Assembly (NCBI GenBank): GCA_011109175.1
Contig: RDEW01000051.1
Span: forward strand, 180,685 to 244,684
Length of the DNA: 64,000 nt
Origin: Dicyema japonicum
Taxonomy: Eukaryota; Animalia; Dicyemida
Reading direction: 5' to 3'
The position numbers and the translations under genes are program-made. Every line of letters starts with the position of its first letter. The first letter of the stretch is position 1. This document shows, piece after piece, positions 378-63,711 of the stretch. The notes under the pieces were generated by a model. That model searched no databases, was not told where the DNA came from, and saw only the letters and a program-made list of their open reading frames with translations.

Positions 378-1338
378 ATGCGATTTTATAAATTTCTAAT
401 TAAAAAAAAATTTAGAAAATTAATTCCAATTATAATCCTCGTATTTTAATAATTAACGAATAGTCGATTTTCCTCATTTCCTCATTTCGAGCTAAGGTCA
501 TCTACGATTATCAGGTAAAATACAAGTTTCTGTTTGTCGTGATTTCAGGTTAAAATGAACTTGTTATTGATAGAACCAAACACGTGCAGAAAAGGAATGC
601 CATCAGGGAAACATGGGGGGACTTGGTGCTGTTGGGAAGGATGAATTCTAAAATTGTCTTCTTCATCGGACAAAGTAAGCAAAGGGACACGTCGTCGATG
701 ATAGAAAACGAACAAAAATTGCACAAGGACATTGTCATTAATAAAAATTTTATCGAAGATTACCTAAATTTGACACTAAAGGTTGAACAAGCACTCACGT
801 GGGCATTGAATGAGTTCAAAGATTTTGATTACTTCGTCAAAATTGACGACGACGTCCTTTTGAATGTCGAAAATTTTGTCTTTTTTCTGCACAAAAGCAT
901 ACCTAAAAAAATTAACTGCCAGGGTCCGCTCATATTTTGCTCAATCAACGCTTATCTGAAGCCAATAAGAGATCCCGAAAACAAGTGGTACCCTTTGTCT
1001 TATTAAGGTTTATCACTGAGGAGGAATATCCCGACTCAAGTTTCCCTGATTATTGTTCCGGACACGTGTATTTGATATCCAAGCAGGCCATCTCTCAACT
1101 TCTGAATAACTGTAGAAACCAAATCAGACTTAATTTTGACGACGTTTATTTCACCGGTAAATTACTCGGTGATTTGACAGGATTATGCCGAGTCGAAAAT
1201 AATATCCCGCTACTTGCACACCCAAAATTCGAACTTTCGAAGAATTCCAATATCTGCAAGTTTACTGACTATGCCACAAAAGTAAATCACTCCGAGGATT
1301 CTCTGAATGATTTAGTGGAGAAATTAGAAAACTGCTAA
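378..1338 (+). CDS. GT31 family beta-1,3-galactosyltransferase/GlcNAc-transferase (B3GALT/brainiac-like)
   Basis: Motifs RNAIRETWG, YFVKIDDDV and EEYPDSSFPDYCSGHVY. The two ORFs join through a 20-nt intron (gtaccctttgtcttattaag). The N-terminal TM exon and start at 378 are inferred. Confidence 0.85.
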
Positions 1339-1439
1339 TAATCTCGATTTTATAGTAAATGCTCTTCCATTTTTATGAGGATCGATTAGTGGAGCGTAGA
1401 TAAGCGACTTGTGGTTTGCTAATTTTGCGGAAAATCAAT

Positions 1440-2400
1440 TTCGTGGAGTTTAATCATTACATAACTCTTAAAAAATCTACCGTGTAAAAGCTCTCGTCGA
1501 ATGGTCCCCCCTTTTTCACGAGAGCCATAATAGCTCCGCATAGACAGGATACATTGGATGGCAAACGAGATTCGCTCAAATAACTAGCAGCGCCCACGGG
1601 GATCTCCTGTTCGTGTAGAACTCCGATTCCATAGACGACTCGAGAATTCAAGCGTCGCAGGCTAAGGGAAGCAGAACTTATGCTAACTAATCGTTGAGGG
1701 AGACAAGGATGATCCAGCAAATTGTGATGTTTTTGCAAGAGTCCCCATCCCACAATTCTATTAAATTCCTCCAAGGAATAGTTTTTGAATAATTTCTTCA
1801 GTCTTTTCTGGTATCACCTCCATCAATTAGATGAGGGCTTCCATGCCTTCCGAGATAAAGTCCGCATAAGGCACAGCGTCTATCCACCCCTAAAGCCTCA
1901 TTTCTTAGAGTCCCGATTCCAAATGTGCTATAAATAATATGGGAGATAGAGGATCTTATCGTTGTCATGAATGGTTTTGAAAATACTCTTCCACAGAGAT
2001 GATGGTAAGAGGACAGATAACGTGACGAACATGCCATGGAGCAGAGGGAAGTGTCTTGCTTTGACTCAACGTGCACAGATACTTTCTAACATGCGAGATT
2101 GCAGAAGGGCTAGAATGGCACGATGGCTCTTCCAGAATATTGGACTCGTGGTCATGAGGGGTATCTGCGCCGTTCGTTTGACATTCATCTAATTTATTAA
2201 CCCCCGAAGCACTAAAAAGAGTTTTGATCCACTCCTCACCATCGTCCAGATGCTATTCACTCAAAAATTCGTATTACAAAAACATGGGCCTATTTCACTG
2301 CAGAAATCAACAAGGGAATCTCCGGAAAGATTTCTGAATCCTCTTCCATGAAATCCCAAGCAATCCTCACCATTCTTTCATACCTCTGCCTTTGCATTCC
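1440..2400 (-). mobile_element. Decayed non-LTR retrotransposon remnant
   Basis: Broken frames with a LINE-like C-terminal Cys motif (GIGTLR...RRCALCGLYLGRHGSPHL). Shares ttattaacccc-gaa-cac with 29.58 kb and 45.63 kb. Confidence 0.35.
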
Positions 2401-3258: not shown

Positions 3259-3354
3259 ATCTAGACGATCTAAAAATAGTTAACTAGGATTATTTTTTAT
3301 CTCTGAAAAATTGATTAATTTTATTTTTTGACAATGATTGACATTTATGAAGTA

Positions 3355-6789: not shown

Positions 6790-9050
6790 TAAAGCTGTAA
6801 TTCAAGTGCGCTTTTATCGGTAATATTCGGCCTAATCAGCATATAGCTTCCTTACATAGAACCATATTAGCTGAATCCTCTGACAGGTGGTCTTCTGAGT
6901 TCTTTAATTTTTGAATGGGCGAGAGTCAAACCTGGATCCTGCATGAAGAGAAAAAAGACTAAGCATACATTCCGTGCAATAGAAGTGCGTCACGACATCT
7001 GCATTAAATATGACTTGATAAATGCAACCCAAAACATCAGGGAAACTCCATCGATGTGTGCAATAACTTGTATAGCCACATACGGAGCTATTTGGTTAAA
7101 GCATTGGTAGTAATAACACCAGAGACTACGGTTACACAAACTACCTAATCACGTGATCCCAGCACGGTCTAGCAGGAACCTCATCTTGCCCCGATGCTCC
7201 TCTTCGTCCCCACACAAGCACGTATCGGTCGAGTGACTGGACCTTCGCAGTCACGACGGCGCGTTCCATGGTTCATTCGTATCAAGGCTTTAAGAGGCAT
7301 TGGTGGCTGGAGTTCTCCAGAGATCCAGCGTTCCGTGATTTTGGAGGCTCTTCTCCGGCTAGCCTCGATCTTCAAGACATTCGTCCAAGAGATCAATGAA
7401 GAGTTTTAGTTTAATTTTGTTTTTTTCATTTAATTATAAAAATGTCTTTTTTAATTTGAAATTTATTAAATATTTTGATAAATTTATTGAACTTTGTGGA
7501 AAAATTATTAAACAAATAGGAAAACCTTGTCTTTATATTATATATTTAAATATTAAATTTTCATGTTATGTTGTTGGTACGATGGTACATTTATTTATTT
7601 ACAACCCAAGACCACGGTAAAACCTAACTAATTATCACGTGATGCATTCTAACAGCGACCTCATCCTGGTGTTCTTCCCTCGTGCCTGCACATGAACGTA
7701 TAGGACGGCTGACAGATTTTTCGGGGCCACATTCCCTTAATTAGGGGGTATTCAAGCATTTCGGATAAATCTTTATATTCACGTTCATTCAAAAAACTGA
7801 TGATCGCCTCATACAATTCTGTTAGAGCCCTTCCTTTCAAAAGCCACCTTATTTCTTGGAAATGTTTTGGAGGAGACTATGCATTACACTATGATTCGTT
7901 TGGGGGTGGATTAACTCTTTAACGTGAGCGACAAATCCTGACCGTTATCAAAGAACAGAAGGAGCTCCGTCTTTTGTCACAGCCAGAGCCCTTCTCGTTG
8001 ATCCCTTTACTTTCTGGCAAGCATTCCTCCGAGGGGTAGATTTTTAAAAAATATAATTTTATTGATTTAATTTAAAATTCATGGGGACCGCCTGATAGAC
8101 GGTGGTTTAGTTTATACTCAATAGAAAAATGAAGATGTAAGGTCAGGGATAGACTTTCCTCTTCCCCCGTTCAGAGGTTACTTACCAGGAGGTTTCGAGT
8201 GCTTCACTAAACTCTTGTTTAAAGGGCAGTAACCTGGATATAATATCTAATATTTAGATCATTTCCGTCTAAAGAACGAGGATACTTTTTTCGTCCGCGT
8301 GGTGGTTGTGCTATGTGGCTAATTGGTTGCAGATTTCTGTATGTTTTGTCTGTTCCTCCTCTTCCCCTTCCAACTATAATGGCGTCATGTGATTCACCTA
8401 TCTCAGGTGGCGCCCAGCGCCAGACTGCCTGGAAAAGGGATCATTTGCTCTCCCCCACTCCACTAGAGCTGTTTCCACAGCTCAAAGAATGACGTCTTTT
8501 ACCCCTTATGCTGGTTCTGACTTTGTTTCTGTGACAGTGGATACTGGATACACTTAGTTGTTTACTGTTAACTCCTTTCTCGGTGTATCCGGGATTAATA
8601 ATAATACTAAGCCATTCCATGTTAGAACTCACAACAAAACCTGAAGTGTTTATAATCCTGCGTTGTTCTACGATTGCCCAGCCAACTCATCGAATACTTA
8701 TCAGCCTTTAATAGAGAAAATCTAGATCAAGATAATCAACTGATGACCCAGATGCATGCTATTTTATTGGAAGTCTTATATAGCCATTCGCATCTTCTCC
8801 ACAACGTCATGTATTGTGGTTATTCCATCTCCTCTACAACTACTGTCTAAGTAGAAGATACTAACGGCATCAATGCCCTTGCTTCCATCCCTATCAGCAA
8901 CCATGAGAATAACTCCCAACCGTCCTCCATAGCAGTAGCCAACAGTTATTTATAACCCTGAAAAACCCCGGGAAATAAGAGCTAAGTATCTTCCATACAT
9001 CTCTACCTCATACGGAATCCTAGTCCGACTACATCATAAAAAATCATCAT
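6790..9050 (-). mobile_element. Fossil LINE (possible endonuclease remnant, RT N-terminus, RT tail)
   Basis: 8330-8630 is homologous to the RT-adjacent segment at 16545-16790 (DKTYRNLQPIS resembles NYRPISL). 7181-7396 has NVLKIEASRRRASK, like a LINE RT tail. 7110-7230 and 7600-7740 match 33670-33820. Confidence 0.55.
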
Positions 9051-12930: not shown

Positions 12931-13109
12931 CAACCTTAATCTATAAGTTTTAATAAAAGTTCCCAGACATCAGAACATTGGTGGACCACCCACGTGGTTA
13001 AAAATCACGACTTAATTATCAATTTAGTAACTCTTCTTAAGACAGTGCTGGCAAGGGATTACATATTTAAATCTTTTTTTGTTAATAAATTGTTATCCCA
13101 TTTAAAAAA

Positions 13110-13898
13110 GACTGGTTCTCAATCTTTTTTCCCGCCACCCATTTTGAAATTTCAACGCCCATCAAAAAATTGCGACCGCCCATGAGTAAATTTAATCTTT
13201 TTAGAATTTTATTAAATTAATTACCCATTTATGTATTCAGCTTTTTAACGAATAGTTTTATTGGAAAAAGAAATAATCAAAACTAATGTGATCCTTGAAA
13301 ATGATGATTTTTAGTCAACGTTGCAATATCGAGCTTGATTCGCTAAAAGTGGAATATCACCTCACACAAATTTCAATTTATTTCGCTCATTTCTCAATAA
13401 ATAATTAAGTGAGCTGAACCTCATTCGACGTTGGAAAGTACAAGATTATGAGACCGAGTTACACAATTTAGGAAACTTCTTTAATCTTAGAATTCTGGCA
13501 AAAATGAGAAATTGAGGTATTCTGAAAGTTAATTTCATCATTTATTATTTTTTTGGGGAGGTGGGGCTTCTAATCTCTCTCTAATTCAGAATCTGAGTTT
13601 AAAATTTTAATTTGACAAGTCAACCATCCAATAATCCTGAAAACGAAAGATTTTCAGATTTGGAAAAATTGGAATAAACCCAAGTGATAAGAATCTGTTT
13701 TGGCAATTAGACTTATCACGAAAAAATTTATTTCACGCTTAATTTGTAGTCTGTGGATATTAAATTTTTATTTTTTTAAATAATAATTTTAATATATTTT
13801 TACTTTTTATTTTTTGTTCTTTTTATAAAAATAAAAAAATCAATAATTAAAAATCCCACCGCCCATTTGAGCGATATCGTCCAGACTGAGAACCACTG
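13110..13898. mobile_element. Internally deleted hAT (Buster/Charlie-type) element or MITE
   Basis: Imperfect TIRs gactggttctcaatct ... agactgagaaccactg (13/16 match). Subterminal cccaccgccca and internal aaagtacaagatta-gaga-cgagtt-cacaattt are shared with 21.7-22.6 kb. No clean 8-bp TSD. Confidence 0.6.
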
Positions 13899-13949
13899 CT
13901 TTAAGATACAAAATGTTAAATTAGTGATTCAATCCTTCAACCCCTTTAT

Positions 13950-14739
13950 ACGAACTTCCATTAATATCTTCAATTTCCCGAGGAATCGACAAGATCAATT
14001 GAAAGGGACCATTTCTGACAGTTGAGAAAGTTGTGACAGTACAGCGAATCTCCACGAACTACTGAGTCAGATTTGTTTCCAAATTTTTGAAACAAGGTGT
14101 TCATGGCGGTAACAGTAGACAGGACTTCCCACATGACAGAAACAGTGTGTTAGTGTAGGCTGGATGAGGATGTGACTATCATTCTATATCAAACGGCTAT
14201 AAATGTTCAACAGGATTTCCATAACCTTAGACCGCAGTTGATAGATGTTCCTTGGGATTTTCATTATACATTGAAAGTGGGGACCAATGATGTCAAATGC
14301 TAAAACTCACTTCGCCCACAGCATGCTAGCTATGGGGCCACACTGCACGTTGGTGGTTGTAAATTTGCACAACACTATATCTTTCCAAAATGGTTAGAAT
14401 TATGTTGTACAAAAGTGAGAGAGGGTAAGGTATCTTCACGGGTGGACCAATGAGGAAGGCCAGCGCCGCTGCGGAGACGTTGAGGCAAACCCTGGACCAG
14501 CCAGAATAGGGTAAGGTAACCACGATCATTGAAAGCTTTAGTTCATCCTCTTCAACGATGAAGAACCTTAGAAGGAAGTTTTTTTTCCGAATGGAAGCCT
14601 TTCCTTCAGAAAACTCCATGTTTTGGTATGAGTTTGAGTCGATGCTTCGTTTCCGGTCAAATTCGACATCGAACTCTAGAGATTTTTGCAATTTGTTGAG
14701 TTGCAATAATTTTTCTTTAGTAAGTACAACAAGATCCAT
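13950..14739 (-). CDS. Hypothetical protein (probably spliced)
   Basis: 137-aa ORF starting just after an AT-rich island, like the other genes here. No family recognised; 3' end uncertain. Confidence 0.35.
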
Positions 14740-14797
14740 TTTCCACTCGAAAATTAATTATAATTATTTGTTTAATTTTTAATCAATTGCCAGAAAG

Positions 14798-14898
14798 AAA
14801 AGGGATCAACGAGAAGGGTTATGGCTAAGACAAAGGATTGGAATAGCCATACTCCGAGGGAACTCGTTCGCAATCCATGCAGCAGGCTTCCTCAACTG
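14798..14898 (+). mobile_element. 3' end of a CRE/SLACS-clade non-LTR retrotransposon
   Basis: Translates KRDQREGLWLRQRIGIAILRGNSFAIHAAGFLN*, matching the QRxSxAxQRGNA C-terminal motif of CRE-like elements. Confidence 0.55.
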
Positions 14899-15404
14899 AC
14901 ATTTGTTTAATTGTTAAAAAATTTTTTGTTTTTAAAAAAAAATCAAATGAATAAAAATTTTTAATACAATTTTTGCTTTAAAATAAATTTATAACGTCCT
15001 AAAAATGCAAAATAAAATCAACTCAGAAAAATCGTGTTAACAGAAAAAATCAGTGACATTTTTTGAAAAATTGAGTGTAGAAATGATTGCATATAAAATT
15101 TATTATAAACTTCACTTATGAAAAAAATCAGAATCGACAATAATAAACAGTTCCAAGCATGCCAAATTAGGCATTAAGAAGCTAAGAAATATAAAAAATA
15201 AAAGAACTCTAAGTACAGATAATAGGTAGTAAAAGAAATTTTTGTGAAATCAGTCGTATAGTTATTAAAGAAGAGCTTAAGAGGCTGTTAAAAATTACAA
15301 TTAACAAAATTGAGATAATGATGGGGAAATGTATAATAAATCCGCATATTAAGATTTTGAAATTTTGAATATATAAAATCAACTGTTAGTAGTTATAAAA
15401 AGAA

Positions 15405-15476
15405 TGACCGGCACGGGATTCGAACCCGTAACCTTCTGATCTGGAGTCAGACGCGCTACCGTTGCGCCAACCAGTC
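15405..15476 (-). tRNA. tRNA-Trp (CCA)
   Basis: 72-nt cloverleaf GACTGGTTGGCGCAACGGTAGCGCGTCTGACTCCAGATCAGAAGGTTACGGGTTCGAATCCCGTGCCGGTCA, with intact stems, CCA anticodon and A/B boxes. Confidence 0.97.
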
Positions 15477-15569
15477 TTTATTTGCTATTTAATACATTTT
15501 AGAATTAACGATTTATTAACAAAATCTTAATCTTAAAATTTTAACTTTATTAGCAAAAAAAATTGTATT

Positions 15570-16790
15570 AACAAAAGAGTTTCTCCCTGCTTTATATACG
15601 TGTCCTGGATCTTTGATCTCCTCCTGAAACCGGTTCTAAGAGCTTGTGCTTGTCCTCGCTTAGACAGTCTTTCAATTTATTGTTTAAGGAGAGCTTAATT
15701 GCAGCTCTCCTAGTCTTCTCTAGGAGGGATAAGATCTTCTTTTTCGGAGATAGGAACCACCCCTCGCACCCATAAAGTAGGCTAGGGAGAATAACCTCCT
15801 TGAAAATAAACAGGTAGGTGTAACTTTCGTGTACATTGGAGCGAGCGAAAGGCTCTCTTTCTCCTCCCCTTTATGTGTCCATATAATCTCCTGTGTCCAT
15901 AGTCGACCCCCAGGTAGCGCAGACTGTGTGCATTGTTTACTCCCAGTGTGTATTCTTGTTTCAGGTGCTTTTTCACATTGCTTATTTGGAGTGCGCAAGA
16001 TCGTCCCTTTTTTAAACATGTTGAAATCTGGCATCAACATACTCTCGGATTCTTCCTTCAGATATAGAAGATTTTAGAGATGTATCCACTTCGATTACTT
16101 CATCCGCATAAAAAGACTAGTATTAATATTCCTCGGACGTGGAAAACTCGCCATGAATATATTAAACAAAATAGGGCTCAATACCGAACCTTGTGGTACT
16201 CCCCTCTTGATTGTCTTTCCTGAAGATAACTTCTTAGCCAAACAAATAGGTATCTTGGCACACATGCTGATACAAGCTGCTTTAACAACACTTCATACAC
16301 TGTCGAATGCTTTCGAGATATCAAGACATAATAAGTCTATTTGCCTCTTGGAATCTTGCTTTCATGATTTCAGAATTCAGTAGAAAGAAACAGTCTCCAC
16401 AGCCTCTTCCGGGACGAAAACTCCACTGCTCCGCATTCTTTTCTATATGTCTGCTTAGCCTTTTGAAAATGATACGTTTAATCACTTTCGCGAAAGAACA
16501 TATCAAGCTCAGAAAGTCATCCGCATAAGAAGACTTCCTATTATAGTGGCGTCATGTGATCCACCTGCCTAGGTGGCGCCCAGTGCCAGGCCGACACGAA
16601 AAAGGATCATTTGCTCTCCCTGACTTCATTGGAGGGGCTTCCACAACTGTAAGTATGGACGTCTTTTATCCATTATTCTGATTCTAGATGGACTCTTTCT
16701 GTGGAAGTGGAAACTGGATACACTCAATTAGTTGCTTACTTTGACTTCCTTCTCGGTGTATCCGGGGTTAATAAATAATAGCTTGCCGGA
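15570..16790 (-). mobile_element. Degenerate RTE-like LINE reverse transcriptase
   Basis: Motifs in order: KVIKRIIFKRL, QWSFRPGRGC, LDISKAFDSV, GVPQGSVLSPILFNIFM, YADEV, LRYLGV, ILPSLLYGCEGW. Several frameshifts. Confidence 0.88.
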
Positions 16791-26880: not shown

Positions 26881-26997
26881 CACCTCAATAAAAATTACAA
26901 TTTAAAACGTTTAAATCATTACAAAAATTTAAAAGTAAAATTCAAAAATAATTAAATTTCCAAGTCGTCCATAAAGTTGTAATTTCCATAGAAATAC

Positions 26998-28235: not shown

Positions 28236-28379
28236 ATGTCCTCTAACCTTAACTATAAAAGAACTCATCATTAAGAATATTTAGGATTGCTTTGTGTCCC
28301 CCATTTTCACTGAAGAGTGAGCTTTGCGCTTTTTTTCGCGTCTGCTGTGCATAAGCCTGAATTTGAAGATATCCCTAAT

Positions 28380-29800: not shown

Positions 29801-29879
29801 ACGCCTTACTGATTAACAACACCCAATTAATATTTAAAATTAAATTCAAAATAAAGTAAAATTTAACAAATACATAAAA

Positions 29880-33895: not shown

Positions 33896-33899
33896 GCAC

Positions 33900-39950: not shown

Positions 39951-40067
39951 AGTTCAGCAGCACCATCCCGCGTCCGTGGTACTCCATTGCACAACCTCTG
40001 CCCAAGCGCCTAATTATTAAGGATCACCAGGCACATATAACAAGAATAAATCGTAAAAAATGAAAAA

Positions 40068-46904: not shown

Positions 46905-49316
46905 AACGTAGTGGTTCTGGCGACTTTTCTGTAGCAAATGTTTGGGGGATCGATTCTCCCGTTCATTACTTGATCATTGTGCAGGATTTCTGGAAGGAAA
47001 ACCACAACAACCCAATTGATCTACAAGAGCGTTGGCCTTGCGATCCTGTGGTGACACTCACAAATAATAAAAGCATAGGCGAACAAATGTTCACCATATT
47101 ATAGGTAGACTCCTCATTATTTAATACGATTGTATCGATCTTAGTGGTTGGGATGCCTATAACAATGACTACTTTGTCAAAAGGATTAAAGTCCCTTCCA
47201 TTAATCGCTTCATTAGTAGATCCTCCTGTGATGCATCTGTTTAAGGAGGCGTCTCTAGGATAGCCTTAATAATAATTTGCTCCCTCACTAAACTGGGTCA
47301 TTCCTTATTGGTTCCCACAACTATGCTTCTACATGTACTTGAGTGCTTGATTCCCCCAACATCGATCATTGGAACTGGACTCCTAATCGAGTACCAGCTG
47401 CCAAGAGACAGTCAGCATGGCGATTCCAAGACGCTGAGAGTATCATCTCCGTCAACGGGTTCTCAGAGTCCTGTTGCGACACGCTTAATTAGCTGTCAAC
47501 CATGACATCCCAGAGTACCTCCGTTAGTAAAAAACGTCATGAGCAACGAAAACATTTCAATATTAAAAGCGTAAATATCGTCAATAATTGACACACTTAG
47601 GTGAGTAAATCCTTCAGAGGTAACAGCGAATCATCAAGGCACGTGTCAAAACATTTCAACTAAAATAACCGGAAAAACGACTCTATCATGTGTACCCCAC
47701 GTGTGCTTCAAATTCAAAGTAGAAATAAGATTTCGCACACAAAACAATTCCTCAATGTCAATAATACACTTTGGGACGCAATAACTTCCAAACATCGAAA
47801 CAACAACAGACCTGGTACGTGTCATTAACAGAAATACAAATTTTCAGCATTTCTTGACAGATAGCGGGAAATTTCAGCCAAATTAGGAGAAATTGACTCC
47901 AAAATGTTCAGAATAGCCGACGGAGTCACCAAATTCTTCACCTTCTTCACTAATGCGGCCACTTGTACGAAGTACTCCCGAATAATCTCGTATTTCTGGT
48001 CCTCTATGAGTTCAGAGTAGTCCACCACAACATCCTTTAATGAAAAGCAAGAATACAGAATCACTAAGCAAATTTACATTTTCTCCCACGTGGTCAATAA
48101 GCCTGAATAAAGCCAAACAGTACTTTTTAGTCAAATCTCTCATATTCTTGTCAAAAAATAACATGACCAAGCTTTGGTAGTACCCCTTCAGGAAAACGGA
48201 GAAGTTTGCTTTGATCTTCAGCAAGGTAACACATAGAAAGTTTATGTAGTCCCTCAGAATCGTCAAGTTGTGTATGGATAGGACATCACTGGACGCCTCC
48301 AATTGGCTCAGCATATTTTTTAACTGAATAAATCATAAATCACCTGATTTCTCGTCCATGGAGCCAATTCGGTAGAGGAATCACCAAAAATGGCAGAGAA
48401 CTGAGTCACTGACTCGAACACATGCTCTCTGTAGAGTTCTACAAGGCTGGAAATCTTCTCAAATGAGGATAAATTGTTGTTTATGGACATAATTCTGCAG
48501 TTTACTCCATTCGTTCTTCCCTACAGGTAAATAGCAAGTAAACCTGCAAAAAGCACTTCCTGAGTTCACCCTCAGTAAATCTCCCGCTTTTTCTAAGGAC
48601 GGTGACGACTTTAAGAAGTTCAGAGACTCGACCTGAACCGCTTTTTAGCTGAGCCAGAAGAAGGTCCACCATTCTGTCGTAGCTGGACTCAATCATGTGA
48701 AGTATTTTCCGGATTATAAATCTTCTTACATTTATTATAGGTATTGGAGAAAGCTTCTTCCAAAGGGTGAGGATTTGGTGGACCTCATCGTAGTTACCCT
48801 CCTCTATTAAGGAGTCAACCGTCTTGGGCATCCTCAGAATGCAGGCCACGTCCTCAATTTCTCTTTGGTTCAAAAACCTATTCAAATAATAAAATTATTT
48901 TTTAATTTAAAAATAAATAATAAACATTTTAATTATTTAAAAAATTAAATAATAATACTAAAAATAAGAAATAAAATAATTTTGCAAAGTTAAATACATT
49001 ACGGTACTTACAAGGTTTGGTCCACTTTGAAATCGTTCATGTTTGGCTTGATAGACTCAATGCTCAACTTTAAGGCTGATATTTGAGAGGTCATTTGAGT
49101 CCGCTTAGGGTAACTAAGGAAAGGACATTATTGTTGATTTGTTCGATGCTCTGAGAGAACTTTATGAAAGATCCATAGTGAGAGAACGTATTGTTCGACA
49201 TTTCTTCGATTACGCTGTTTATTTCTGATTCAATTTCATTTGGTTTATTTACTAATGGGGTTATTGGTAACATTACATAATTTTGATATATTTTCAGAGA
49301 TGTTATCACTAGACAT
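46905..49316 (-). CDS. COG8: Conserved oligomeric Golgi complex subunit 8, full-length copy
   Basis: FSHYGSFIKFS, ILRMPKTVDSLIEEGNYDEV and VLRKSGRFTEGELRKCFLQ. 120-nt AT-rich intron at 48878-48997. 3' end approximate. Confidence 0.8.
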
Positions 49317-50512
49317 GTGTGACTCACAAAGATCAATTATTTAAATTAAATTTAATAAATTCAAAGTTATATTTATTATTTATTAAATTAACAGCAGATA
49401 CTAAAATAAACGGTAGATAATAGAGAGACCTTCCAATATCACGCATAAGTCTTTCAGAATTAGCGAAGAGGGAGAAAACATCCAGAGGGAGAAACTTCTT
49501 CAATACAAAAGAATCTCAACTCTCTATTATTTATAGTAATGTAGGCGGCGGATTCCTCGAAACACAAAATTTGAGCATATCGTTTGATTTTTTCCCTTTC
49601 TCTCCAGTCAATGAATTTATCGAGTTGTCATGAAAATCTTAATTTTTTTCAATTGCTTATCGTGTTGATTCCACTAGAACATATTTTATAAGTATATTTT
49701 CAAAAAAACTAATATAAGTTTTATTTTTTTATTATTAATAATTTCTTCCAATGAAATGTTTTCTGAAAATTTATTTTTCGTATTTTGAGCATTCACATCG
49801 CAGCTCTGGGGTCTCGCAGATTTGTACTGTGACATTTTATAAAATAAATTAGGGAAGAAGATATTCTTTTAGAAAAAAATTGAACTATCAAAAGGCTGAA
49901 CTGACAAATAAAAGCAATGAATTTAATATGTGTCCTGAAATACTTGACTATTCTTTAAATTTTGTTGGAGAGGTTAAAGAGACAGGTGAGAATGTTATTC
50001 GGCTCTTCAAGGGTTAAAAAATTATTTTAAACAGCTTGAATTGTTTAAATGGAATGCAGAGGTTAAATCAAATTTCAAGAAAGGAAATGAGTTTTATAAC
50101 AGAATTGGTTTTTCAAAAATAAATTTTTCTTTATCACTCCTTCTAGCTGCCCAAAATAGGAGATTAGGTGGAGTCTTACTGTAAGTTGTATTCGATTCAT
50201 TTAATAACTTTTTGATTAGACAACGACAGAAGATTATGAGAGAGCATCAACTCCGACTAATCCAACTATCAGTTATGGTTGTGGCGCTTGGGGAACAAAC
50301 TTAGCCACCCACGTGTCCAAATGTTCCACATCTCTTTCAGTGCACAAGACACCAGCATGAGTACTCGTGGACTTGTCGATCTATGAGAGCAATCGGAATT
50401 TACCGCGTCTACTTATCCCCCTGCAAGTTAGTGAAGTCGGGGTAGTGACGTCAGGGGGGTCAAAAGTTAGAATTACTAAGCCCACGTGATTTAAAGAAAA
50501 CTTGGGAAAATA

Positions 50513-52150
50513 TTACACAAAAGTTAGTAAATTAAACAACAGAAGTCTTGGGGGCTCCTTTTCGCGCTTCGAGCGACTTGGGGACGAAGAAAGACAAAAT
50601 AATCAGACACAAATAAAAAAATGCGATAAATTCGAAGGAAATCAGAGACCCAAAGACCTTCCCAATACTCAAGTCACATTTGAGGGATGCTGCGTATATG
50701 CTCTCAAACATCACGGGAGCAATGGATCTGCAATATTTCCCAATCAAACCTGAAGAGGCACGACAGCGACAATCCAATTCCATTCACGGTCCCCACATCC
50801 TTCACATCCGCAGCGTTGTTGAGAATCAGTCCGATTGGACCGAACATCATGATGTTGTTCGATTTATCAGTATATATTCGACGTACATGAACACTGTGCT
50901 CCCATACGAGGACTGCGTAAAGCACAAATTACACATTTTCGTCAAATGATGTAACTGAGGGGATTGAGGCGATCAGGGGAGAGCGAGCATGTTGACATAC
51001 TTAATGACCTTAAGATCAGACAGTTACCAAACCCAGATGATCCCAAATCTGGACATTAACTGAGTGAAGACGAAGATGGTCAGGAATATCCCTGGGATGG
51101 AGCAGAACGTGATGAAATTCCCAATGGCTTTCGCGGAAAACCCGAGTCCCCCGGATTGAACTTCCGTGGAAAGGTATAGAATCAGCAATTCGTCAACTCC
51201 AATGGAGCATAGCGAAAAGAGCAAGTAGATCCCCAACGAAATGATGACCTTTTTGGATCTATTTCAGTAAACTCAAAAGTGACCTCATTATGCGTGCAAA
51301 AGCCCTGAGAGTCGACTCCTTCGCTGAATTTGGCGGGTTCTTTCATTTCAATGCTGGTGGTCATGCGTATTCTGTTGAAACCTCAAAATACTTTCTTTTG
51401 AGGGATTTTTCGAAGACGTAAACAGAGGTTACGTTTATTCCGATGAAGCGGTCACCACGAGGGAGCACAGGAAGTAGGGGTATCGCATGAAAAACGAAGT
51501 CTTGAACACGTTCGAGTACAATTTGGCTGGATTTTGCAAATATCCTTAATGGGGGTAACAACCACGTGATACCGCCAACCATGGACCCTAAAATGGTCCC
51601 GACATAGACTCCAATCATGTGGAAGAGCATTCCTATGGACTGGTTTTCGTTTGTGCATAAATCGTAGAACTATCGCTTTGCTCAACAAAGCGGTCCCTTC
51701 AATCACGGAAAAATAAACCGGAAACGAGACCAATTAACAGCTTCATGCAAATCGTGAAGTACAGATCAATCGTAAGCCCGAAAATGAGCGTGAATAGGCC
51801 ACTCATGGTTAGGCAGACCATCAGAACACGGTATTTGCTCATTTTGTCTGCAAGTCTACCAATTATGACACTAAAGCTTATCTCCAATAGTTTACCTCCC
51901 AAAAATTCGTCCTCCATAAAATGCCGTTTGGACAAGGCCGGCGTAGTACCCCTTTTCGTACTCCGAATAGCCGAAGAACTGGAAAATCACTAAACCCCAA
52001 CTCTAATCATTTCGGGGATAAATGGCTGGGAGAAAAGCGCGAGAAGACTGGTGGTGATCTTATCTAATCAAATCCAGGGTACCATGTTCATAGTAATCAC
52101 GGTGATTGCTGAAATTGACAACTTTGTGGGTCATACTCCAGATTTTTCAT
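50513..52150 (-). CDS. MFS transporter, copy 2 (homopolymer frameshifts)
   Basis: Near-identical to 36916-38558. Confidence 0.7.
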
Positions 52151-53974
52151 GATTCTCAAAATAACTGTCGACGTTGTACAATCTACAACTTAAATAGACT
52201 TAACCGCAATAATCACTTAAATATCACGTGAACTTACGGTGACTCATATCTTTCGTTAACGACATTGATCTACATTTAAGACTCCCATTAATGTGACTGT
52301 TTCTATTTTAGTTGAAGAGCCTCCCCCGATGATTGAATCATTAATTCCTTATACTTCACTAAATCCTAATCAATTTAAATCGATACTGGCTATTGATCTT
52401 TGCCCACAATTGCTGAGTGTTGCCTCTTGTGGTAGCGAGGGAGATCAAATGGGAGAGCTTCTGGTGTTTACTTTGGTGAAGCCTTGAATGCCACGTGACC
52501 TCTTTCACGTGACTCTTAGTAATTCAGCAGCCTGGTATCTATTTATGACTCCCTTTTGTGCAACTAATTCATTTCCTGTCCACGTGGTCCGTGGGTGATC
52601 TGTTTCTTCCAACTTGTATGAGCGCCAACACTATCAGCTGGACGCTTGAGGGCAGCCAACCCCCTCCAAGGATCCTCGTCTTTATTAGACCATTAGCCGA
52701 AAATACTTCCTATATTTTTGTAGGTCAGCCTTTATTTGGGGATGTGGAAGACCTCGCCAGGACGTCCACCAACTTGGTTATTTTTTTGATGTGATCTCTC
52801 ATCATTGCGTCATGCCTGGTAAGAAAAATTCTTGGAAACGGAAAAGGGTTAATTAGTCGACATTAGAATAGAAAAAAATATGAAGAGACGTTCACATCAC
52901 AAAAAAGTCTACCGTAAATAACATGTTTAACAAACCCCACATGAATGTGAAGACCACCAATCAGAGATAAACCATCCGACTGATATTTGAAAGCACGGGT
53001 TTTAGCTGCTACGTTCCTGTTGGCCACGTGTTTCCTTCACTTAAAGGTGTCGATTGAACAGAGTTAAGTGTCACAAGAACAACTCATCGATGCTCTAAAA
53101 CGTTCTGTGGAACTGACACGAGGATTTTAATAAAGTCTAATTTAAAATATAAATGAGGTAACGTCGGCTTCTCTAGACTGAAATAGCTAATGAGAAGGAA
53201 GCGCATTATGGAGATGCCTCAGTATGCTAGTCACGTGGGCACGCATGATTCTGTTCGGTTTTTTTTAAATTGACCAAAACATGGCAGAAAATTTCATCAC
53301 GGAGAACTACGTCGCAGCAAGTCCACGTACGGTGCTTCCTGAAATTCTTAATGAGGATCTGAAACTGGTGAAGAAAGCAATGAGCAACAGCGAAGACCCT
53401 AGTGATCTGAAGAGTCTGGCGTTAAACAAAGGAGGGCGGAAGAGAGGAAGAGCAAACTAATCAAAGCGAGGTACATCAGAATTAAACGTCTCTATGCTAG
53501 CTTGCTTTCACGAAGAAGCAAAGACAAAGTTCATCAGCACCATCCCGCGTCCATAGTCATCCATTGCACAACCTCTGCCCGAAAGCGCCTAGTTATTAAA
53601 GATCACAAGGCACATATAACAAGAATAAATCGTAAAAAATGAAAAATCAGTCAATTCTGATCTTCCGGGCAATCAAACCCGGTAGCAGATGCTTAATATA
53701 GACAGCGAGCCGATGTTTCAGGGGTCCGATGATAATGTGGGAATCGTTTTGATCACTGATAGCCTTCACAATCTCCCTGGCCACATATTGCCCCACGTTT
53801 TGTAGCCACTACCAAGCGAACCGTTAAGTAGTTACTCTGTAAGGGAGTAAGTTCAAGTCTGTTAGCTGCAATAGTAGGGCTTTTTCTCAACGTAAAGCTG
53901 ACCCACGTGCAGAAGAGACAACATAGAGTTACATATTAACCCCCAAAATTACCAAAAAGAAGTTATTTGATGTA

Positions 53975-55922: not shown

Positions 55923-57114
55923 GTGTGACTCACAAAGATCAATTATTTAAATTAAATTTAATAAATTCAAAGTTATATTTATTATTTATTAAATTAACAG
56001 CAGATACTAAAATAAACGGTAGATAATAGAGATTCCTTCCAATATCACGCATAGTCTTTCAGAATTAGCCGAAGAGGGAAAAACATCCAGAGGGAGAAAC
56101 TTCTTCAATACAAAAGAATCTCAACTCTCTATTATTTATAGTAATGTAGGCGGCGGATTCCTCGAAACACAAAATTTGAGCATATCGTTTGATTTTTTCC
56201 CTTTCTCCAGTCAATGTATTTATCGAGTTGTCATGAAAATCTTAATTTTTTTCAATTGCTTATCGTGTTGATTCCACTAGAACCATATTTTATAATTGAT
56301 ATTTTCAAAAAAACTAATATATTTTTTATTTTCTAGTATTAATAATTTTTTCCAATGAAATGTTTTCTGAAAAATTATTTTCGTATTTTGAGCATTCACA
56401 TCGCGGCTCTGGGGTCTCGCAGATTGTACTGTGACATTTTATAAAATAAATTAGGGAAGAAGATATTCTTTTAGAAAAAAATTGAAACTATCAAAAGGCT
56501 GAACTGACAAATAAAAGCAATGAATTTAATATGTGTCCTGAAATACTTGACTATTCTTTAAATTTTGTTGGAGAGGTTAAAGAGACTGGTGAGAATGTTA
56601 TTCGGCTCTTCAAGGGTTAAAAAATTATTTTAAACAGCTTGAATTGTTTAAATGGAATGCAGAGGTTAAATCAAATTTCAAGAAAGGAAATGAGTTTTAT
56701 AACAGAATTGGTTTTTCAAAAATAAATTTTTCTTTATCACTCCTTCTAGCTGCCCAAAATAGGAGATTAGGTGGAGTCTTACTGTAAGTTGTAATTCGAT
56801 TCATTTAATAACTTTTTGATTAGACAACGACAGAAGATTATGAGAGAGCATCAACTCCGACTAATCCAACTATCAGTTATGGTTGTGGCGCTTGGGGAAC
56901 AAACTTAGCCACCCACGTGTCCAAATGTTCCACATCTCTTTCAGTGCACAAGACACCAGCATGAGTACTCGTGACTTGTCGATCTATGAGAGCAATCGGA
57001 ATTTACAGCGTCTACTTATCCCCCTGCAAGTTAGTGAAGTCGGGGTAGTGACGTCAGGGGGTCAAAAGTTAGAATTACTAAGCCCACGTGATTTAAAGAA
57101 AACTTGGGAAAATA

Positions 57115-58759
57115 TTACACAAAAGTTAGTAAATTAAACAACAGAAGTCTTGGGGGCTCCTTTTCGCGCTTCGAGCGACTTGGGACGAAGAAAGACAAAA
57201 TAATCAGACACAAATAAAAAAATGCGATAAATTCGAAGGAAATCAGAGACCCAAAGACCTTCCCAATACTCAAGTCACATTTGAGGGATGCTGCGTATAT
57301 GCTCTCAAACATCACGGGAGCAATGGATCTGCAATATTTCCCAATCAAACCTGAAGAGGCACGACAGCGACAATCCAATTCCATTCACGGTCCCCACATC
57401 CTTCACATCCGCAGCGTTGTTGAGAATCAGTCCAATTGGACCGAACATCATGATGTTGTTCGATTTTATCAGTATATATTCGACGTACATGAACACTGTG
57501 CTCCCATACGAGGACCTGCGTAAAGCACAAATTACACATTTTCGTCAAAATGATGTAACTGAGGGGATTGAGGCGATCAGGGGGAGAGCGAGCATGTTGA
57601 CATACTTAATGACCTTAAGATCAGACAGTTACCAAACCCAGATGATCCCAAATCTGGACATTAACTGAGTGAAGACGAAGATGGTCAGGAATATCCCTGG
57701 GATGGAGCAGTACGTGATGAAATTCCCAATGGCTTTCGCGGAAAACCCGAGTCCTCCGGATTGAACTTCCGTGGAAAGGTATAGAATCAGCAATTCGTCA
57801 ACTCCAATGGAGCATAGCGAAAAGAGCAAGTAGATCCCCAACGAAATGATGACCTTTTTGGATCTATTTCAGTAAACTCAGAAAGTGACCTCATTATGCG
57901 TGCAAAAGCCCTGAGAGTCGACTCTTCGTTGAAATATTTGGCGGGTTCTTTCATTTCAATGCTGGTGGTCAGGCGTATTCTGTTGAAACCTCAAAATACT
58001 TTCTTTTGAGGGATTTTTCGAAGACGTAAACAGAGGTTACGTTTATTCCGATGAAGGCGGTCACCACGAGGGAGCACAGGAAGTAGGGGTATCGCATGAA
58101 AAACGAAGTCTTGAACACGTTCGGGTACAATTTGGCTGGATTTTGCAAATATCCTTAATGGGGGTAACAACCACGTGATACCGCCAACCATGGACCCCAA
58201 AATGGTCCCGACATAGACTCCAATCATGTGGAAGAGCATTCCTATGGACTGGTTTTCGTTTGTGCATAAATCGTAGACTATCGCTTTGCTCAACAAAGCG
58301 GTCCCTTCAATCACGGAAAAATAAACCGGAAACGAGACCAATTAACAGCTTCATGCAAATCGTGAAGTACAGATCGATCGTAAGCCCGAAAATGAGCGTG
58401 AATAGGCCACTCATGGTTAGGCAGACCATCAGAACACGGTATTTGCTCATTTTGTCTGCAAGTCTACCAATTATGACACTAAAGCTTATCCCCAATAGTT
58501 TACCTCCCAAAAATTCGTCCTCCGTAAAATGCCGTTTGGACAAGGCCGGCGTAGTACCCCTTTTCGTACTCCGAATAGCCGAAAAACTGGAAAATCACTA
58601 AACCCCAACTCTAATCATTTCGGGGATAAATGGCTGGGAGAAAAGCGCGAGAAGACTGGTGGTGATCTTATCTAATCAAATCCAGGGTACCATGTTCATA
58701 GTAATCACGGTGATTGCTGAAATTGACAACTTTGTGGGGTCATACTCCAGATTTTTCAT
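57115..58759 (-). CDS. MFS transporter, copy 3
   Basis: Near-identical to 36916-38558. Confidence 0.7.
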
Positions 58760-60569
58760 GATTCTCAAAATAACTGTCGACGTTGTACAATCTACAACTT
58801 AAATAGACTTAACCGCAATAATCACTTAAATATCACGTGAACTTACGGTGACTCATATCTTTCGTAAACGACATTGATCTACATTTAAGACTCCCATTAA
58901 TGTGACTGTTTCTATTTTAGTTGAAGAGCCTCCCCCGATGATTGAATCATTAATGCCTTACACTTCACTAAATCCTAATCAATTTAAATCGATACTGGCT
59001 ATTGATCTTTGCCCATAATTGCTGAGTGTTGCCTCTTGTGGTAGCGAGGGAGATCAAATGGGAGAGCTTCTGGTGTTTACTTTGGTGAAGCCTTGAATAT
59101 CACGTGACCTCTTTCACGTGACCCTTACTAATTCAGCAGCCTGGTATCTATTTATGACTCACTTTTGTGCAACTAAATCATTTCCTGTCCACGTGGTCCG
59201 TGGGTGATCTGTTTCTTCCAACTTGTATGAGCGCCAACACTATCAGCTGGACGCTTGAGGGCAGCCAACCCCCTCCAAGGATCCTCGTCTTTATTAGACC
59301 ATTAGCCGAAAATACTTCCTATATTTTTGTAGGTCAGCCTTTATTTGGGGATGTGTAAGACCTCGCCTGGACGTCCACCAACTTGGTTATTTTTTTGATG
59401 TGATCTCTCATCATTGCGTCATGCCTGGTAAGAAAAATTCTTGGAAACGGAAAAGGGTTAATTAGTCGACATTAGAATAGAAAAAAATATGAAGAGACGT
59501 TCACATCACAAAAAAGTCTCCGTAAATAACATGTTTAACAAACCCCACATGAATGTGAAGACCACCAATCAGAAATAAACCATCCGACTGATATTTGAAA
59601 GCACGGGTTTTAGCTGCTACGTTCCTGTTGGCCACGTGTTTCCTTCACTTAAAGGTGTCGATTGAACAGAGTTAAGTGTCACAAGAACAACTCATCGATG
59701 CTCTAAAACGTTCTGTGGAACTGACACGAGGATTCTAATAAAATCTAATTTAAATATAAATGGAAGTAACGTCGGTTTCTCTAGGACTGAAATAGCTAAT
59801 GAGAGGAAGCGCATTATGGAGATGCTTCAGTATGCTAGTCACGTATGATTCTGTTCGGTTTTTTTAAAATTGACCAAAACATGGCAGAAAATTTCATCAC
59901 AGAGAACTACGTCGCAGCACGTCACGTTCAGTGCTTCCTGAAATTCTTAATGAGGATCTGAAACTGGTGAAGAAAGCAATGAGCAACAGCAAAGACCCTA
60001 TGATCTGAAAAGTCTGCCGTTAAACAGAGGAGGGCGGAAGAGAGGAAGAGCAAACTAATCAAAGCGAGGTACATCAGAATTAAACGTCTCTATGCTAGCT
60101 TGCTTTCACGAAGAAACAAAGACAAAGTTCAGCAGCACCATCCCGCGTCCGTGGTACTCCATTGCACAACCTCTCCAAGCGCCTAATTATTAAGGATCAC
60201 CCAGGCAACATATAACAAGAATAAATCGTAAAAAAATGAAATCAGTCAATTCTGATCTTCCGGGCAATCAAACCCGGTAGCAGATGCTTAATATAGACTG
60301 CGAGCCGATGTTTCAGGGGTTCCGATGAGAATGTGGGAATCGTTTTGATCACTGATAGGCTTCACAATCTCCTGGCCACATATTGCCCCACGTTTTGTAG
60401 CCACTACCAAGCGAACCGTTAAGTAGTTACTCTGTAAGGGAGTAAGTTCAAGTCTGTTAGCTGCAATAGTAGGGCTTTTTCTCAACGTAAAGCTGACCCA
60501 CGTGCAGAAGAGACAACATAGAGTTACATATTAACCCCCAAAATTACCAAAAAGAAGTTATTTGATGTA

Positions 60570-62517
60570 TGGAACTGGACTCCTAATCGAGTACCAGCTG
60601 CCAAGAGACAGTCAGCATGGCGATTCCAAGACGCTGAGAGTATCATCTCCGTCAACGGGTTCTCAGAGTCCTGTTGCGACACGCTTAATTAGCTGTCAAC
60701 CATGACATCCCAGAGTACCCCCGTTAGTAAAAAACGTCATGAGCAACGAAAACAGATTTCAATATTAAAAGCGTAAATATCGTCAATAATTGACACACTT
60801 AGGTGAGTAAATCCTTCAGAGGTAACAGCGAATCATCAAGGCACGTGTCAAAACATTTCAACTAAAATAACCGGAAAAACGACTCTATCATGTGGACCCC
60901 ACGTGTGCTTCAAATTCAAAGTAGAAATAAGATTTCGCACACAAAACAATTCCTCAATGTCAATAATACACTTTGGGACGCAATAACTTCCAAACATCGA
61001 AACAACAACAGACCTGGCACGTGTCATTAACAAAAATACAAATTTTCAGCATTTCTTGACAGATAGCGGGAAATTTCAGCCAAATTAGGAGAAATTGACT
61101 CCAAAATGTTCAGAATAGCCGACGGAGTCACCAAATTCTTCACCTTCTTACTAATGCGGCCACTTGTACGAAGTACTCCCGAATAATCTCGTATTTCTGG
61201 TCCTCTATGAGTTCAGAGTAGTCCCACCACACATCCTTTAATGAAAAGCAAGAATACAGAATCACTAAGCAAATCTACATTTTCTCCCACGTGGTCAATA
61301 AGCCTGAATAAAGCCAAACAGTACTTTTTAGTCAAATCTCTCATATTCTTGTCAAAAAATGACATGACCAAGCTTTGGTAGTACCCCTTCAGGAAAACGG
61401 AGAAGTTTGCTTTGATCTTCAGCAAGGTGGCACATAGAAAGTTTATGTAGTCCCTCAGAATCGTCAAGTTGTGTATGGATAGGAACATCACTGGACGCCT
61501 CCAATTGGCTCAGCATATTTTTTAACTGAATAAATCATAAATCACCTGATTTCTCGTCCATGGAGCCAATTCGGTAGAGGAATCACCAAAAATGGCAGAG
61601 AACTGAGTCACTGACTCGAACACATGCTCTCTGTAGAGTTCTACAAGGCTGGAAATCTTCTCAAATGAGGATAAATTGTTGTTTATGGACATAATTCTGC
61701 AGTTTACTCCATTCGTTCTTCCCTACAGGTAAATAGCAAGTAAACCTGCAAAAAGCACTTCCTGAGTTCACCCTCAGTAAATCTCCCGCTTTTTCTAAGG
61801 ACGGTGACGACTTTAAGAAGTTCAGAGACTCGACCTGAACCGCTTTTTAGCTGAGCCAGAAGAAGGTCCACCATTCTGTCGTAGCTGGACTCAATCATGT
61901 GAAGTATTTTCCGGATTATAAATCTTCTTACATTTATTATAGGTATTGGAGAAAGCTTCTTCCAAAGGGTGAGGATTTGGTGGACCTCATCGTAGTTACC
62001 CTCCTCTATTAAGGAGTCAACCGTCTTGGGCATCCTCAGAATGCAGGCCACGTCCTCAATTTCTCTTTGGTTCAAAAACCTATTCAAATAATAAAATTAT
62101 TTTTTAATTTAAAAATAAATAATAAACATTTTAATTATTTAAAAAATTAAATAATAATACTAAAATAAGAAATAAAATAATTTTGCAAAGTTAAATACAT
62201 TACGGTACTTACAAGGTTTGGTCCACTTTGAAATCGCTCATGTCTGGCTTGATAGACTCAATGCTCAACTTTAAGGCTGATATTTGAGAGGTCATTTGAG
62301 TCCGCTTAGGGTAACTAAGGAAAGGACATTATTGTTGATTTGTTCGATGCTCTGAGAGAACTTTATGAAAGATCCATAGTGAGAGAACGTATTGTTCGAC
62401 ATTTCTTCGATTACGCTGTTTATTTCTGATTCAATTTCATTTGGTTTATTTACTAATGGGGTTATTGGTAACATTACATAATTTTGATATATTTTCAGAG
62501 ATGTTATCACTAGACAT
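60570..62517 (-). pseudogene. COG8: COG8 copy 3, 3'-truncated
   Basis: Same truncation as copy 2. Confidence 0.7.
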
Positions 62518-63711
62518 GTGTGACTCACAAAGATCAATTATTTAAATTAAATTTAATAAATTCAAAGTTATATTTATTATTTATTAAATTAACAGCAGAT
62601 ACTAAAATAAACGGTAGATAATAGAGAGATTCCTTCCAATATCACGCATAAGGTCTTTCAGAATTAGCCGAAGAGGGAAAACATCCAGAGGGAGAAACTT
62701 CTTCAATACAAAAGAATCTCAACTCTCTATTATTTATAGTAATGTAGGCGGCGGATTCCTCGAAACACAAAATTTGAGCATATCGTTTGATTTTTTCCCT
62801 TTCTCCAGTCAATGAATTTATCGAGTTGTCATGAAAATCTTAATTTTTTTCAATTGCTTATCGTGTTGATTCCACTAGAACCATATTTTATAATTGATAT
62901 TTTCAAAAAAACTAATATATTTTTTATTTTTTATATTAATAATTTTTCCAATGAAATGTTTTCTGAAAAATTATTTTCGTATTTTGAGCATTCACATCGC
63001 GGCTCTGGGGTCTCGCAGATTTGTACTGTGACATTTTATAAAATAAATTAGGGAAGAAGATATTCTTTTAGAAAAAAATTGAACTATCAAAAGGCTGAAC
63101 TGACAAATAAAAGCAATGAATTTAATATGTGTCCTGAAATACTTGACTATTCTTTAAATTTTGTTGGAGAGGTTAAAGAGACTGGTGAGAATGTTATTCG
63201 GCTCTTCAAGGGTTAAAAAATTATTTTAAAACAGCTTGAATTGTTTAAATGGAATGCAGAGGTTAAATCAAATTTCAAGAAAGGAAATGAGTTTTATAAC
63301 AGAATTGGTTTTTCAAAAATAAATTTTTCTTTATCACTCCTTCTAGCTGCCCAAAATAGGAGATTAGGTGGAGTCTTACTGTAAGTTGTAATTCGATTCA
63401 TTTAATAACTTTTTGATTAGACAAACGACAGAAGATTATGAGAGAGCATCAACTCCGACTAATCCAACTATCAGTTATGGTTGTGGCGCTGGGGAACAAA
63501 CTTAGCCACCCACGTGTCCAAATGTTCCACATCTCTTTCAGTGCACAAGACACCAGCATGAGTACTCGTGGACTTGTCGATCTATGAGAGCAATCGGAAT
63601 TTACCGCGTCTACTTATCCCCCTGCAAGTTAGTGAAGTCGGGGTAATGACGTCAGGGGGTCAAAAGTTAGAATTACTAAGCCCACGTGATTTAAAGAAAA
63701 CTTGGGAAATA

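Follow-up and report, generated by a model that had tools for sequence, protein, structure and literature searches.

Frame-independent excess of the palindrome CACGTG in a 64-kb window of the Dicyema japonicum genome

Introduction

Oligomers that occur far more often than composition predicts are known from several bacterial systems, and the closest precedent for the case described here is the highly iterated palindrome HIP1 of cyanobacteria (GCGATCGC). Our subject is an excess of the palindrome CACGTG in 64,000 nucleotides of DNA from the dicyemid Dicyema japonicum (assembly GCA_011109175.1, contig RDEW01000051.1, positions 180,685 to 244,684 of the forward strand), hereafter the window, in which position 1 is the first letter. 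HIP1 reaches densities of 300-2700 per Mb and observed/expected ratios (O/E) of 55-228 (PMC4390886). The same source describes Elhai's model, in which methyl-dependent mismatch repair creates HIP1 sites up to about 1 per kb, and lists Chi and the DNA uptake and uptake signal sequences (DUS/USS) as over-represented oligomers explained as self-mark or molecular drive (PMC4390886). The origin of the bacterial palindromes is still debated, and a palindrome excess blind to reading frame has so far been described only in bacteria (HIP1 and, related to it, Chi and uptake sequences).

In eukaryotes the same hexamer is the core of the class-B E-box, G-box or CDEI element read by Myc-Max, USF, TFE/MITF, Cbf1 and Pho4, and its symmetry implies a dimeric reader. 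Ordinary E-boxes are sparse promoter or enhancer sites without genome-wide enrichment. Full-text literature searches returned no paper that names CACGTG together with Dicyema, nor any highly iterated palindrome from a eukaryote; the general CACGTG literature found consisted only of regulatory E-box/G-box work plus one paper on TET preference (PMC9451156). Two dicyemid genome papers (PMC6736024, PMC6543705) do not mention the motif, and what the dicyemid genome paper says of helix-loop-helix factors is confined to the loss of neuronal ones. Here we quantify the excess, show that it is neither a repeat, a codon-usage effect nor an assembly artefact, and weigh the mechanisms that could produce it.

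Results

All counts refer to this one 64,000-bp window, which has a GC content of 39.05%. CACGTG occurs exactly 90 times, with the first start at 581 and the last at 63683 (span 581-63688). Base composition predicts 8.6 sites (O/E 10.5), and 100 dinucleotide-preserving shuffles gave 6.31 (standard deviation 2.52, maximum 13), an excess of about 14-fold; an earlier examination of the letters alone (the sequence-only reading) had put the figures at about 90 sites and roughly tenfold. Under Markov models of orders 1, 2, 3 and 4 the whole-window expectation is 6.3, 12.1, 26.5 and 54.8 per strand, that is, O/E of 14.3, 7.5, 3.4 and 1.6, and CACGTG ranks first among over-represented hexamers at orders 1-3. 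The ratio at order 4 is low because the conditioning pentamers CACGT and ACGTG are inflated by the hexamer itself; CACGT without the following G stands at just 1.4-fold. The excess is confirmed in the window and is statistically overwhelming. The 90 sites start at:

581, 796, 1063, 4193, 4653, 7150, 7636, 9894, 11199, 11382, 12991, 17360, 19042, 19179, 19362
19821, 19983, 20487, 20957, 21198, 22771, 22873, 23353, 23455, 23907, 25564, 25906, 26046, 26870, 27072
27331, 28408, 30183, 30412, 30420, 30565, 30712, 30744, 30893, 33709, 35200, 35558, 35936, 36041, 36371
36713, 36886, 37971, 38633, 38900, 38914, 38989, 40617, 40648, 40688, 43218, 44168, 45326, 47640, 47698
48087, 50310, 50483, 51563, 52225, 52492, 52506, 52581, 53025, 53232, 53904, 54247, 54306, 54424, 54696
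56914, 57085, 58172, 58834, 59101, 59115, 59190, 59633, 60499, 60842, 60900, 61018, 61288, 63511, 63683

Self-comparison shows a tandem amplicon at the end of the window, whose copies account for 29 of the 90 sites and duplicate part of the COG8 (Dor1) gene. Its unit is drawn from three non-adjacent source pieces:

36711-64000: 6.6-kb unit in about three tandem copies, 97-99% identical
36711-40209: source piece A
43102-43290: source piece C
47370-50307: source piece B
50308-53789: second copy of A (A2)
56912-60384: third copy of A (A3)

With everything past 50307 removed, 61 sites remain against 4.8 expected at order 1, 9.1 at order 2 and 17.6 at order 3 (12.7-, 6.7- and 3.5-fold), so the excess is not a duplication effect; the previous estimate for the non-duplicated first 50 kb, about 60, was nearly exact. 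Site density is 1406 per Mb over the whole window and 1213 per Mb once the duplicated DNA is left out, about one site per 0.7-0.8 kb.

The resemblance to HIP1 is close in several respects. Both are short perfect palindromes, far over-represented in coding sequence (in any frame) and in non-coding sequence; the 1.2-1.4 sites per kb found here fall inside the 0.3-2.7 per kb of HIP1; and in both cases the words that overlap the motif are the next most enriched. The differences are equally clear. Here the host is an animal nuclear genome rather than a cyanobacterium, the motif has six positions instead of eight, and its O/E by composition, 9-14, is about ten-fold below the 55-228 of HIP1. Sites are clustered here, whereas HIP1 is described as quasi-periodic (PMC13756078). 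The cognate orphan DNA methyltransferases of HIP1, which recognise the motif or its core, have no known counterpart here, and the CpG statistics show no trace of methylation.

The enriched unit is the bare intact hexamer. All nine one-mismatch classes stand at 0.9-1.9-fold in 1-50307, and the other fifteen CANNTG E-boxes at 0.5-1.4-fold. One-mismatch variants had been thought frequent as well, which is true only weakly: CATGTG/CACATG stands at 1.38-fold, CACGTT/AACGTG at 1.9-fold and the rest at 0.9-1.7-fold (CTCGTG/CACGAG at 1.67-fold). General palindrome enrichment was rejected, since no other palindromic hexamer exceeds 2.6-fold: the next highest of the 64 is GACGTC (15 vs 5.8), a mild deviation. 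Information in the flanks is at most 0.23 bit (0.23 at -1, 0.10 at -3). A pyrimidine precedes 70% of CACGTG sites and 67% of other CAC, and a C precedes 43% and 31%, respectively, so that of the flank preference claimed earlier (C/T before the motif) the pyrimidine is largely generic and only C is modestly raised; there is also a modest purine preference at -3. These two preferences are reminiscent of Myc-Max-type flanks. Eight-base palindromes make up 21 of the 61 sites, against 18.1 from independent flanks.

Because the flanks are nearly uninformative, the motif is not repeat-borne, and intra-window repeats hold only 2 of the 61 non-duplicated sites. Carriage by a dispersed repeat, such as a short interspersed element (SINE) or a miniature inverted-repeat transposable element, was rejected on these grounds, there being no shared extended flanks. 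Also rejected were a heptamer resembling a recombination signal sequence (CACAGTG is present only 2 times) and, on the evidence, an origin as transposon target-site duplication or footprint.

Some palindromic hexamers are rarer than expected in 1-50307, namely TACGTA (1 vs 5.8), CTATAG (1 vs 7.5), AGCGCT (0 vs 3.3) and GGGCCC (1 vs 4.1); like that of GACGTC, these deviations are small counts uncorrected for multiple tests. An old dispersed repeat pair, 7579-7737 and 33648-33822, is 79% identical and has CACGTG at the matching position in both members (7636, 33709).

Sequence classes were set by the longest open reading frame (ORF) and by Pfam-supported ORFs, because a self-trained classifier based on codon usage told coding and non-coding DNA apart too poorly to be relied on. 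Counts against expectations from the dinucleotide composition of each class are:

no ORF of at least 50 codons in any frame (10.2 kb, GC 33%): 7 vs 0.50, 14-fold
ORFs of at least 100 codons: 21 vs 1.29, 16-fold
Pfam-supported ORFs: 19 vs 0.80, 24-fold
everything else: 42 vs 3.99, 10.5-fold

The force is thus about uniform over classes (10-24-fold), and the 2- to 3-fold higher raw density in genes is mostly compositional. Spacing is mildly clustered, not quasi-periodic, with a variance/mean of 1.44-1.81 in bins of 0.5-1 kb. One stretch stands out:

12997-17359: longest site-free stretch, 4.36 kb, GC about 36%, where about 4 sites are expected at window density

It holds no credible coding ORF, and an Atlas look-up of its largest ORF returned no credible family. 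This AT-rich stretch may be younger inserted DNA.

Codon usage was controlled in a set of 22 non-overlapping ORFs of at least 100 codons (8.8 kb). The set contains 16 CACGTG, against 2.26 ± 1.42 after synonymous shuffling (maximum 7 in 500) and 1.36 ± 1.14 after shuffling of codon order, so the excess stays under codon-aware nulls as it does under the Markov models of orders 2 and 3. All three frames are used, in keeping with the sequence-only reading, which had noted exon sites in different frames: 10 sites read CAC-GTG (His-Val, frame 0), 2 nCA-CGT-Gnn (frame 1) and 4 nnC-ACG-TGn (frame 2). Of 11 His-Val pairs 10 are spelled CAC-GTG, where codon usage predicts 14%. ACG is chosen in 4/4 contexts in which a C precedes Thr-Cys or Thr-Trp, although it makes up 17% of Thr codons. 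As a dipeptide, His-Val is itself in excess, with 11 occurrences where 4.9 are expected; Val-His occurs twice. The force acts at the DNA level and overrides codon usage.

These results separate the motif from ordinary E-boxes, with which it shares an identical core. At 10-24-fold in every class, ORF-free DNA included, about one site per 0.7-0.8 kb and a synonymous choice close to saturation, the sites are not ordinary promoter elements. The proposal that the excess is HIP1-like, independent of frame, present in all classes and distinct from ordinary transcription-factor sites held up as a description.

The densest cluster lies in a gene for the CCA-adding tRNA nucleotidyltransferase, identified by Pfam PolyA_pol matches and a PDB match to TRNT1 (E = 4e-37). 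Individual coding and intron features are:

30183-30898, minus strand: densest cluster, 7 sites in about 0.7 kb, CCA-adding enzyme gene
30497-30518, minus strand: 22-nt micro-intron, GT..AG, skipped in a spliced RNA contig of run X5
30729-30755, minus strand: probable 27-nt micro-intron, GTAA..CAG, holding site 30744-30749; a 9-residue stretch absent from human TRNT1
985-1004, plus strand: 20-nt micro-intron, GT..AG, inferred from protein alignment
23353-23460, minus strand: two His-Val sites spelled CAC-GTG in an SMPDL3-like metallophosphoesterase gene, contexts ..SHVPPG.. and ..NHVAV..

Apart from 30893, the sites of the CCA-adding gene are coded as HV, HV, HV, V-T-C and HV, plus P-R-D at 30744 in the probable micro-intron. 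In the alignment the dicyemid enzyme has G-H-V-I where the human one has G-T-L-F, and E-H-V-D where the human one has D-H-D-P, which suggests that the motif is accommodated by amino-acid change too. The 27-nt stretch at 30729-30755 is very probably a micro-intron, judging from an alignment gap, GT..AG ends and a typical length, and is not directly seen in the listed RNA contigs; the site at 30744 would bear out the statement that sites also lie inside introns. Among animals, introns of such length are known only from myxobolid myxozoans and D. japonicum (PMC13644364).

Contigs of four public runs span 25500-31000 and have no variant within any of the 14 sites there; with about 44 contig variants and 84 motif bases only 0.7 would be expected in the motif, so this comparison has no power on motif variation. 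Run X5 is a separate sample from 2017, and its contig leaves out exactly 22 nt at 30497-30518. As it skips a GT..AG intron, X5 is RNA, and its spliced contig carries sites 30412, 30420, 30565 and 30712 unchanged. The sites are present in independent DNA and RNA runs, so they are no assembly artefact.

Three DNA runs also reveal a short, high-copy SINE-like repeat at about 29364-29731, whose contig words reach 40-80 times the depth seen in its flanks. Many contigs leave its ends into unrelated sequence, and it contains no CACGTG.

The amplicon copies permit a comparison of recent paralogs, in which the following features matter:

36711-36718: CCCACGTG, exact start of piece A; the same octamer is the B|A junction at 50308, 56912 and 63509
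39432-39437: CACATG in A1, CACGTG in A2 (53025) and A3 (59633)
39655-39660: CACATG in A1, CACGTG in A2 (53232); A3 has CACGT, then a deletion
47816-47821: TACGTG in B1, CACGTG in B2 (54424) and B3 (61018)

These paralogs are 2-3% diverged. Of their 102 motif columns 3 differ, where the background rate would give 2.3. Loss slowed 13-fold would predict about 0.2-0.4 differing columns (about 0.2 losses plus 0.16 neutral gains; P ~0.006), a comparison of small, unpolarised numbers. The B|A junction starts 2 nt before a CACGTG, the A|C junction falls between CCACGTA and CCCACGT, and the C|B junction is without the motif. Given one site per 0.7 kb, the association of junctions with the motif is no more than suggestive, at the few-percent level. 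CpG positions changed among the copies at 3.7%, other C/G at 3.0%, and the CpG O/E of the window is 0.85, which suggests little or no germline CpG methylation.

Discussion

Our preferred explanation, to which we assign a probability of roughly 0.4, is that the nuclear genome of this animal has a highly iterated palindrome, CACGTG, with repair or conversion biased by a reader of the motif as the mechanism. A directional force at the DNA level would raise the odds of an intact site about 10-15-fold (S ~2.5). With e^S = 12.7 and a baseline of 0.143, our own calculation gives 68% of His-Val pairs as CAC-GTG; the observed 10/11 is near this prediction (P ~0.09), so one parameter fits both the non-coding density and the synonymous saturation. 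Enrichment of about 13-fold for the intact site and about 1-fold for its neighbours fits any model that favours only the complete hexamer, at all six positions. From a perfect 6-bp palindrome with independent flanks we infer a symmetric, dimeric reader of double-stranded DNA. The animal fold with exact CACGTG specificity is the basic helix-loop-helix leucine zipper (bHLH-Zip; USF/Max/TFE type), and a dimer of this obvious animal family would be the candidate. Such a reader would bias repair or gene conversion: in a heteroduplex of motif and variant, or where one homolog carries the site, the outcome would favour the CACGTG strand, and site gain would then outpace loss genome-wide. We prefer this bias to selection because such selection at tens of thousands of sites seems unlikely in a fast-evolving, repeat-laden, probably inbreeding parasite.

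Several points weigh against biased repair or conversion. It is deduced from frequencies at equilibrium, and these look alike under mutation bias, conversion bias and weak selection; it also rests on measurements in a single window. The three paralog differences are unpolarised, each setting one copy against the other two with no outgroup. Mild clustering and the empty 4.4-kb stretch indicate some unevenness in the force or in the age of the sequence. Dicyemids probably self-fertilise, in which case meiotic biased conversion would find few heterozygous sites to act on; since inbreeding weakens such a bias, the bias may have to operate during the correction of mismatches.

Two models survive, namely repair or conversion bias toward the intact palindrome and weak selection for dense sites. 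In the latter, which we regard as possible and rather unlikely, an abundant bHLH-Zip factor would use dense CACGTG as a chromatin organiser or as a 'self' mark analogous to Chi, with a small benefit per site. It yields the same frequency pattern as drive, an enriched intact site among neutral neighbours, and a density of about one site per 0.7-0.8 kb is like the functional densities of HIP1 and Chi-like elements; the absence of a site from the high-copy element at 29364-29731 agrees with it, though the element is too short to weigh much. It would, however, need a 4Nes of about 2.5 (Ne, effective population size; s, selection coefficient) at tens of thousands of sites, synonymous and ORF-free ones included, where Ne is likely low in a parasite that evolves fast, probably inbreeds and has repeats in 49% of its genome (PMC6736024). 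The motif columns of recent paralogs show no purifying constraint, and spacing is over-dispersed rather than regular. The paralogs also bear on hypomutability, in which a protein bound to the hexamer protects it from damage or makes its repair more effective; gain is then normal and loss 10-15 times slower. This predicts exactly the equilibrium seen, with an enriched site and neighbours at baseline, and we nevertheless consider it highly improbable: 3 of 102 differing columns is what the background rate gives (small numbers, unpolarised), and bound transcription factors usually raise local mutation rates.

A role for methylation has the closest known precedent. A methyltransferase, possibly acquired horizontally, would mark CACGTG, and methylation-linked mismatch repair would create and maintain sites, as proposed for HIP1 or as in the Dcm/Vsr system of Escherichia coli, where a repair bias lifts a short palindrome independently of coding (CCWGG up, CTWGG down). 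Density and frame-independence agree with this, the motif contains a CpG, and known restriction-modification systems of bacteria recognise CACGTG. The enrichment of CACGTG is far above that of CCWGG in E. coli. The CpG O/E of 0.85, the near-equal mutability of CpG and other C/G (3.7% vs 3.0%) and the undepleted CATGTG/CACATG (1.38-fold), unlike CTWGG in E. coli, argue against repair of deaminated 5-methylcytosine (5mC) as the source, and a repair that acts on a single mismatch type cannot treat all nine neighbour classes alike, as all six positions are treated here. The 5mC statistics may leave room for N4-methylcytosine, N6-methyladenine or motif-restricted methylation, and we hold the explanation as a whole to be quite unlikely. 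TET preference (PMC9451156) was rejected as a mechanism, as it could only protect CpGs from decay and, at a CpG O/E of 0.85, gives no 13-fold excess. A second suggestion of the sequence-only reading was a chromatin or rearrangement signal beside methylation and repair; the 5mC version of the latter is weakened, and the choice of mechanism is not established. Dicyemids are reported to eliminate DNA in somatic cells. CACGTG could accordingly be the signal or footprint of programmed rearrangement, as a B|A junction that starts exactly with CCCACGTG and an A|C junction between two near-motifs would allow, and dicyemid DNA rearrangements and extrachromosomal circles are documented (PMC6543705). One exact match in three junctions has a chance of a few percent, the C|B junction lacks the motif, and the motifs reported on dicyemid circles differ, being 12-20 bp long and confined to circles (PMC6543705). 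A footprint also leaves unexplained both the CAC-GTG spelling of 10/11 His-Val pairs and the unchanged sites in mRNA, and we think this origin very unlikely. Trivial causes (composition, codons, repeat, duplication or artefact) are refuted within the window and keep a negligible share of our credence. The 29 of 90 sites in amplicon copies and the order-4 ratio of 1.6 would speak for them, but the pentamers behind that ratio are enriched only via the hexamer (CACGT without G, 1.4-fold), and 61 sites against 4.8 remain without duplicates (still 6.7- and 3.5-fold at orders 2 and 3); the 16 sites against codon-aware nulls of 2.3 and 1.4, the uninformative flanks, the 2/61 sites in repeats and the concordant DNA and RNA runs complete the case.

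Like Chi and DUS/USS, CACGTG may be an over-represented oligomer kept by a DNA-processing machine that recognises it; those oligomers differ in being non-palindromic, often biased by strand or orientation, and bacterial. We know of no analogous machinery in animals. A bolder reading, speculative and with the odds against it, would have CACGTG as the first animal highly iterated palindrome: a molecular drive or Chi-like mark of self DNA, read by a CACGTG-binding dimer, which rewrote the whole dicyemid genome, bends codon choice and amino acids, and separates old resident from new mobile DNA. If true, the whole genome of a eukaryote, including its synonymous codons and some of its amino acids, can be moulded by a sequence-specific directional force, whether through biased repair or conversion or through the marking of self DNA, and a new experimental route opens, given that animals have a candidate reader family in bHLH-Zip. 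On the practical side, CACGTG is a strong compositional signature for which dicyemid gene finders, motif-discovery tools and substitution models would need to allow.

Other features of the window

Pfam scans of about 100 window ORFs identified only host genes: a beta-1,3-galactosyltransferase, an aspartyl protease, a guanylate kinase, a SIX homeobox, zf-BED, the SMPDL3-like enzyme, the CCA-adding enzyme, enkurin, GNAT, SDR, RMND1 and COG8. The animal nature of the DNA is evident from the SIX homeobox, enkurin, COG8, beta-1,3-galactosyltransferase and TRNT1 and from spliceosomal introns of 20-27 nt. GC and repeat content, together with the data sets of 2017 and 2019, agree with D. japonicum (PMC6736024). 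Protein searches with the SIX exon (one distant match) and the CCA-enzyme exon (none) found no dicyemid relative. No reverse-transcriptase or endonuclease domain was found in the scanned ORFs, so that the 'dead LINE' (long interspersed element) context assigned to some sites is unconfirmed. A weak zf-BED match (E = 0.0015) at 21713-21925 on the minus strand could be a domesticated or decayed fragment of a hAT-type transposase.

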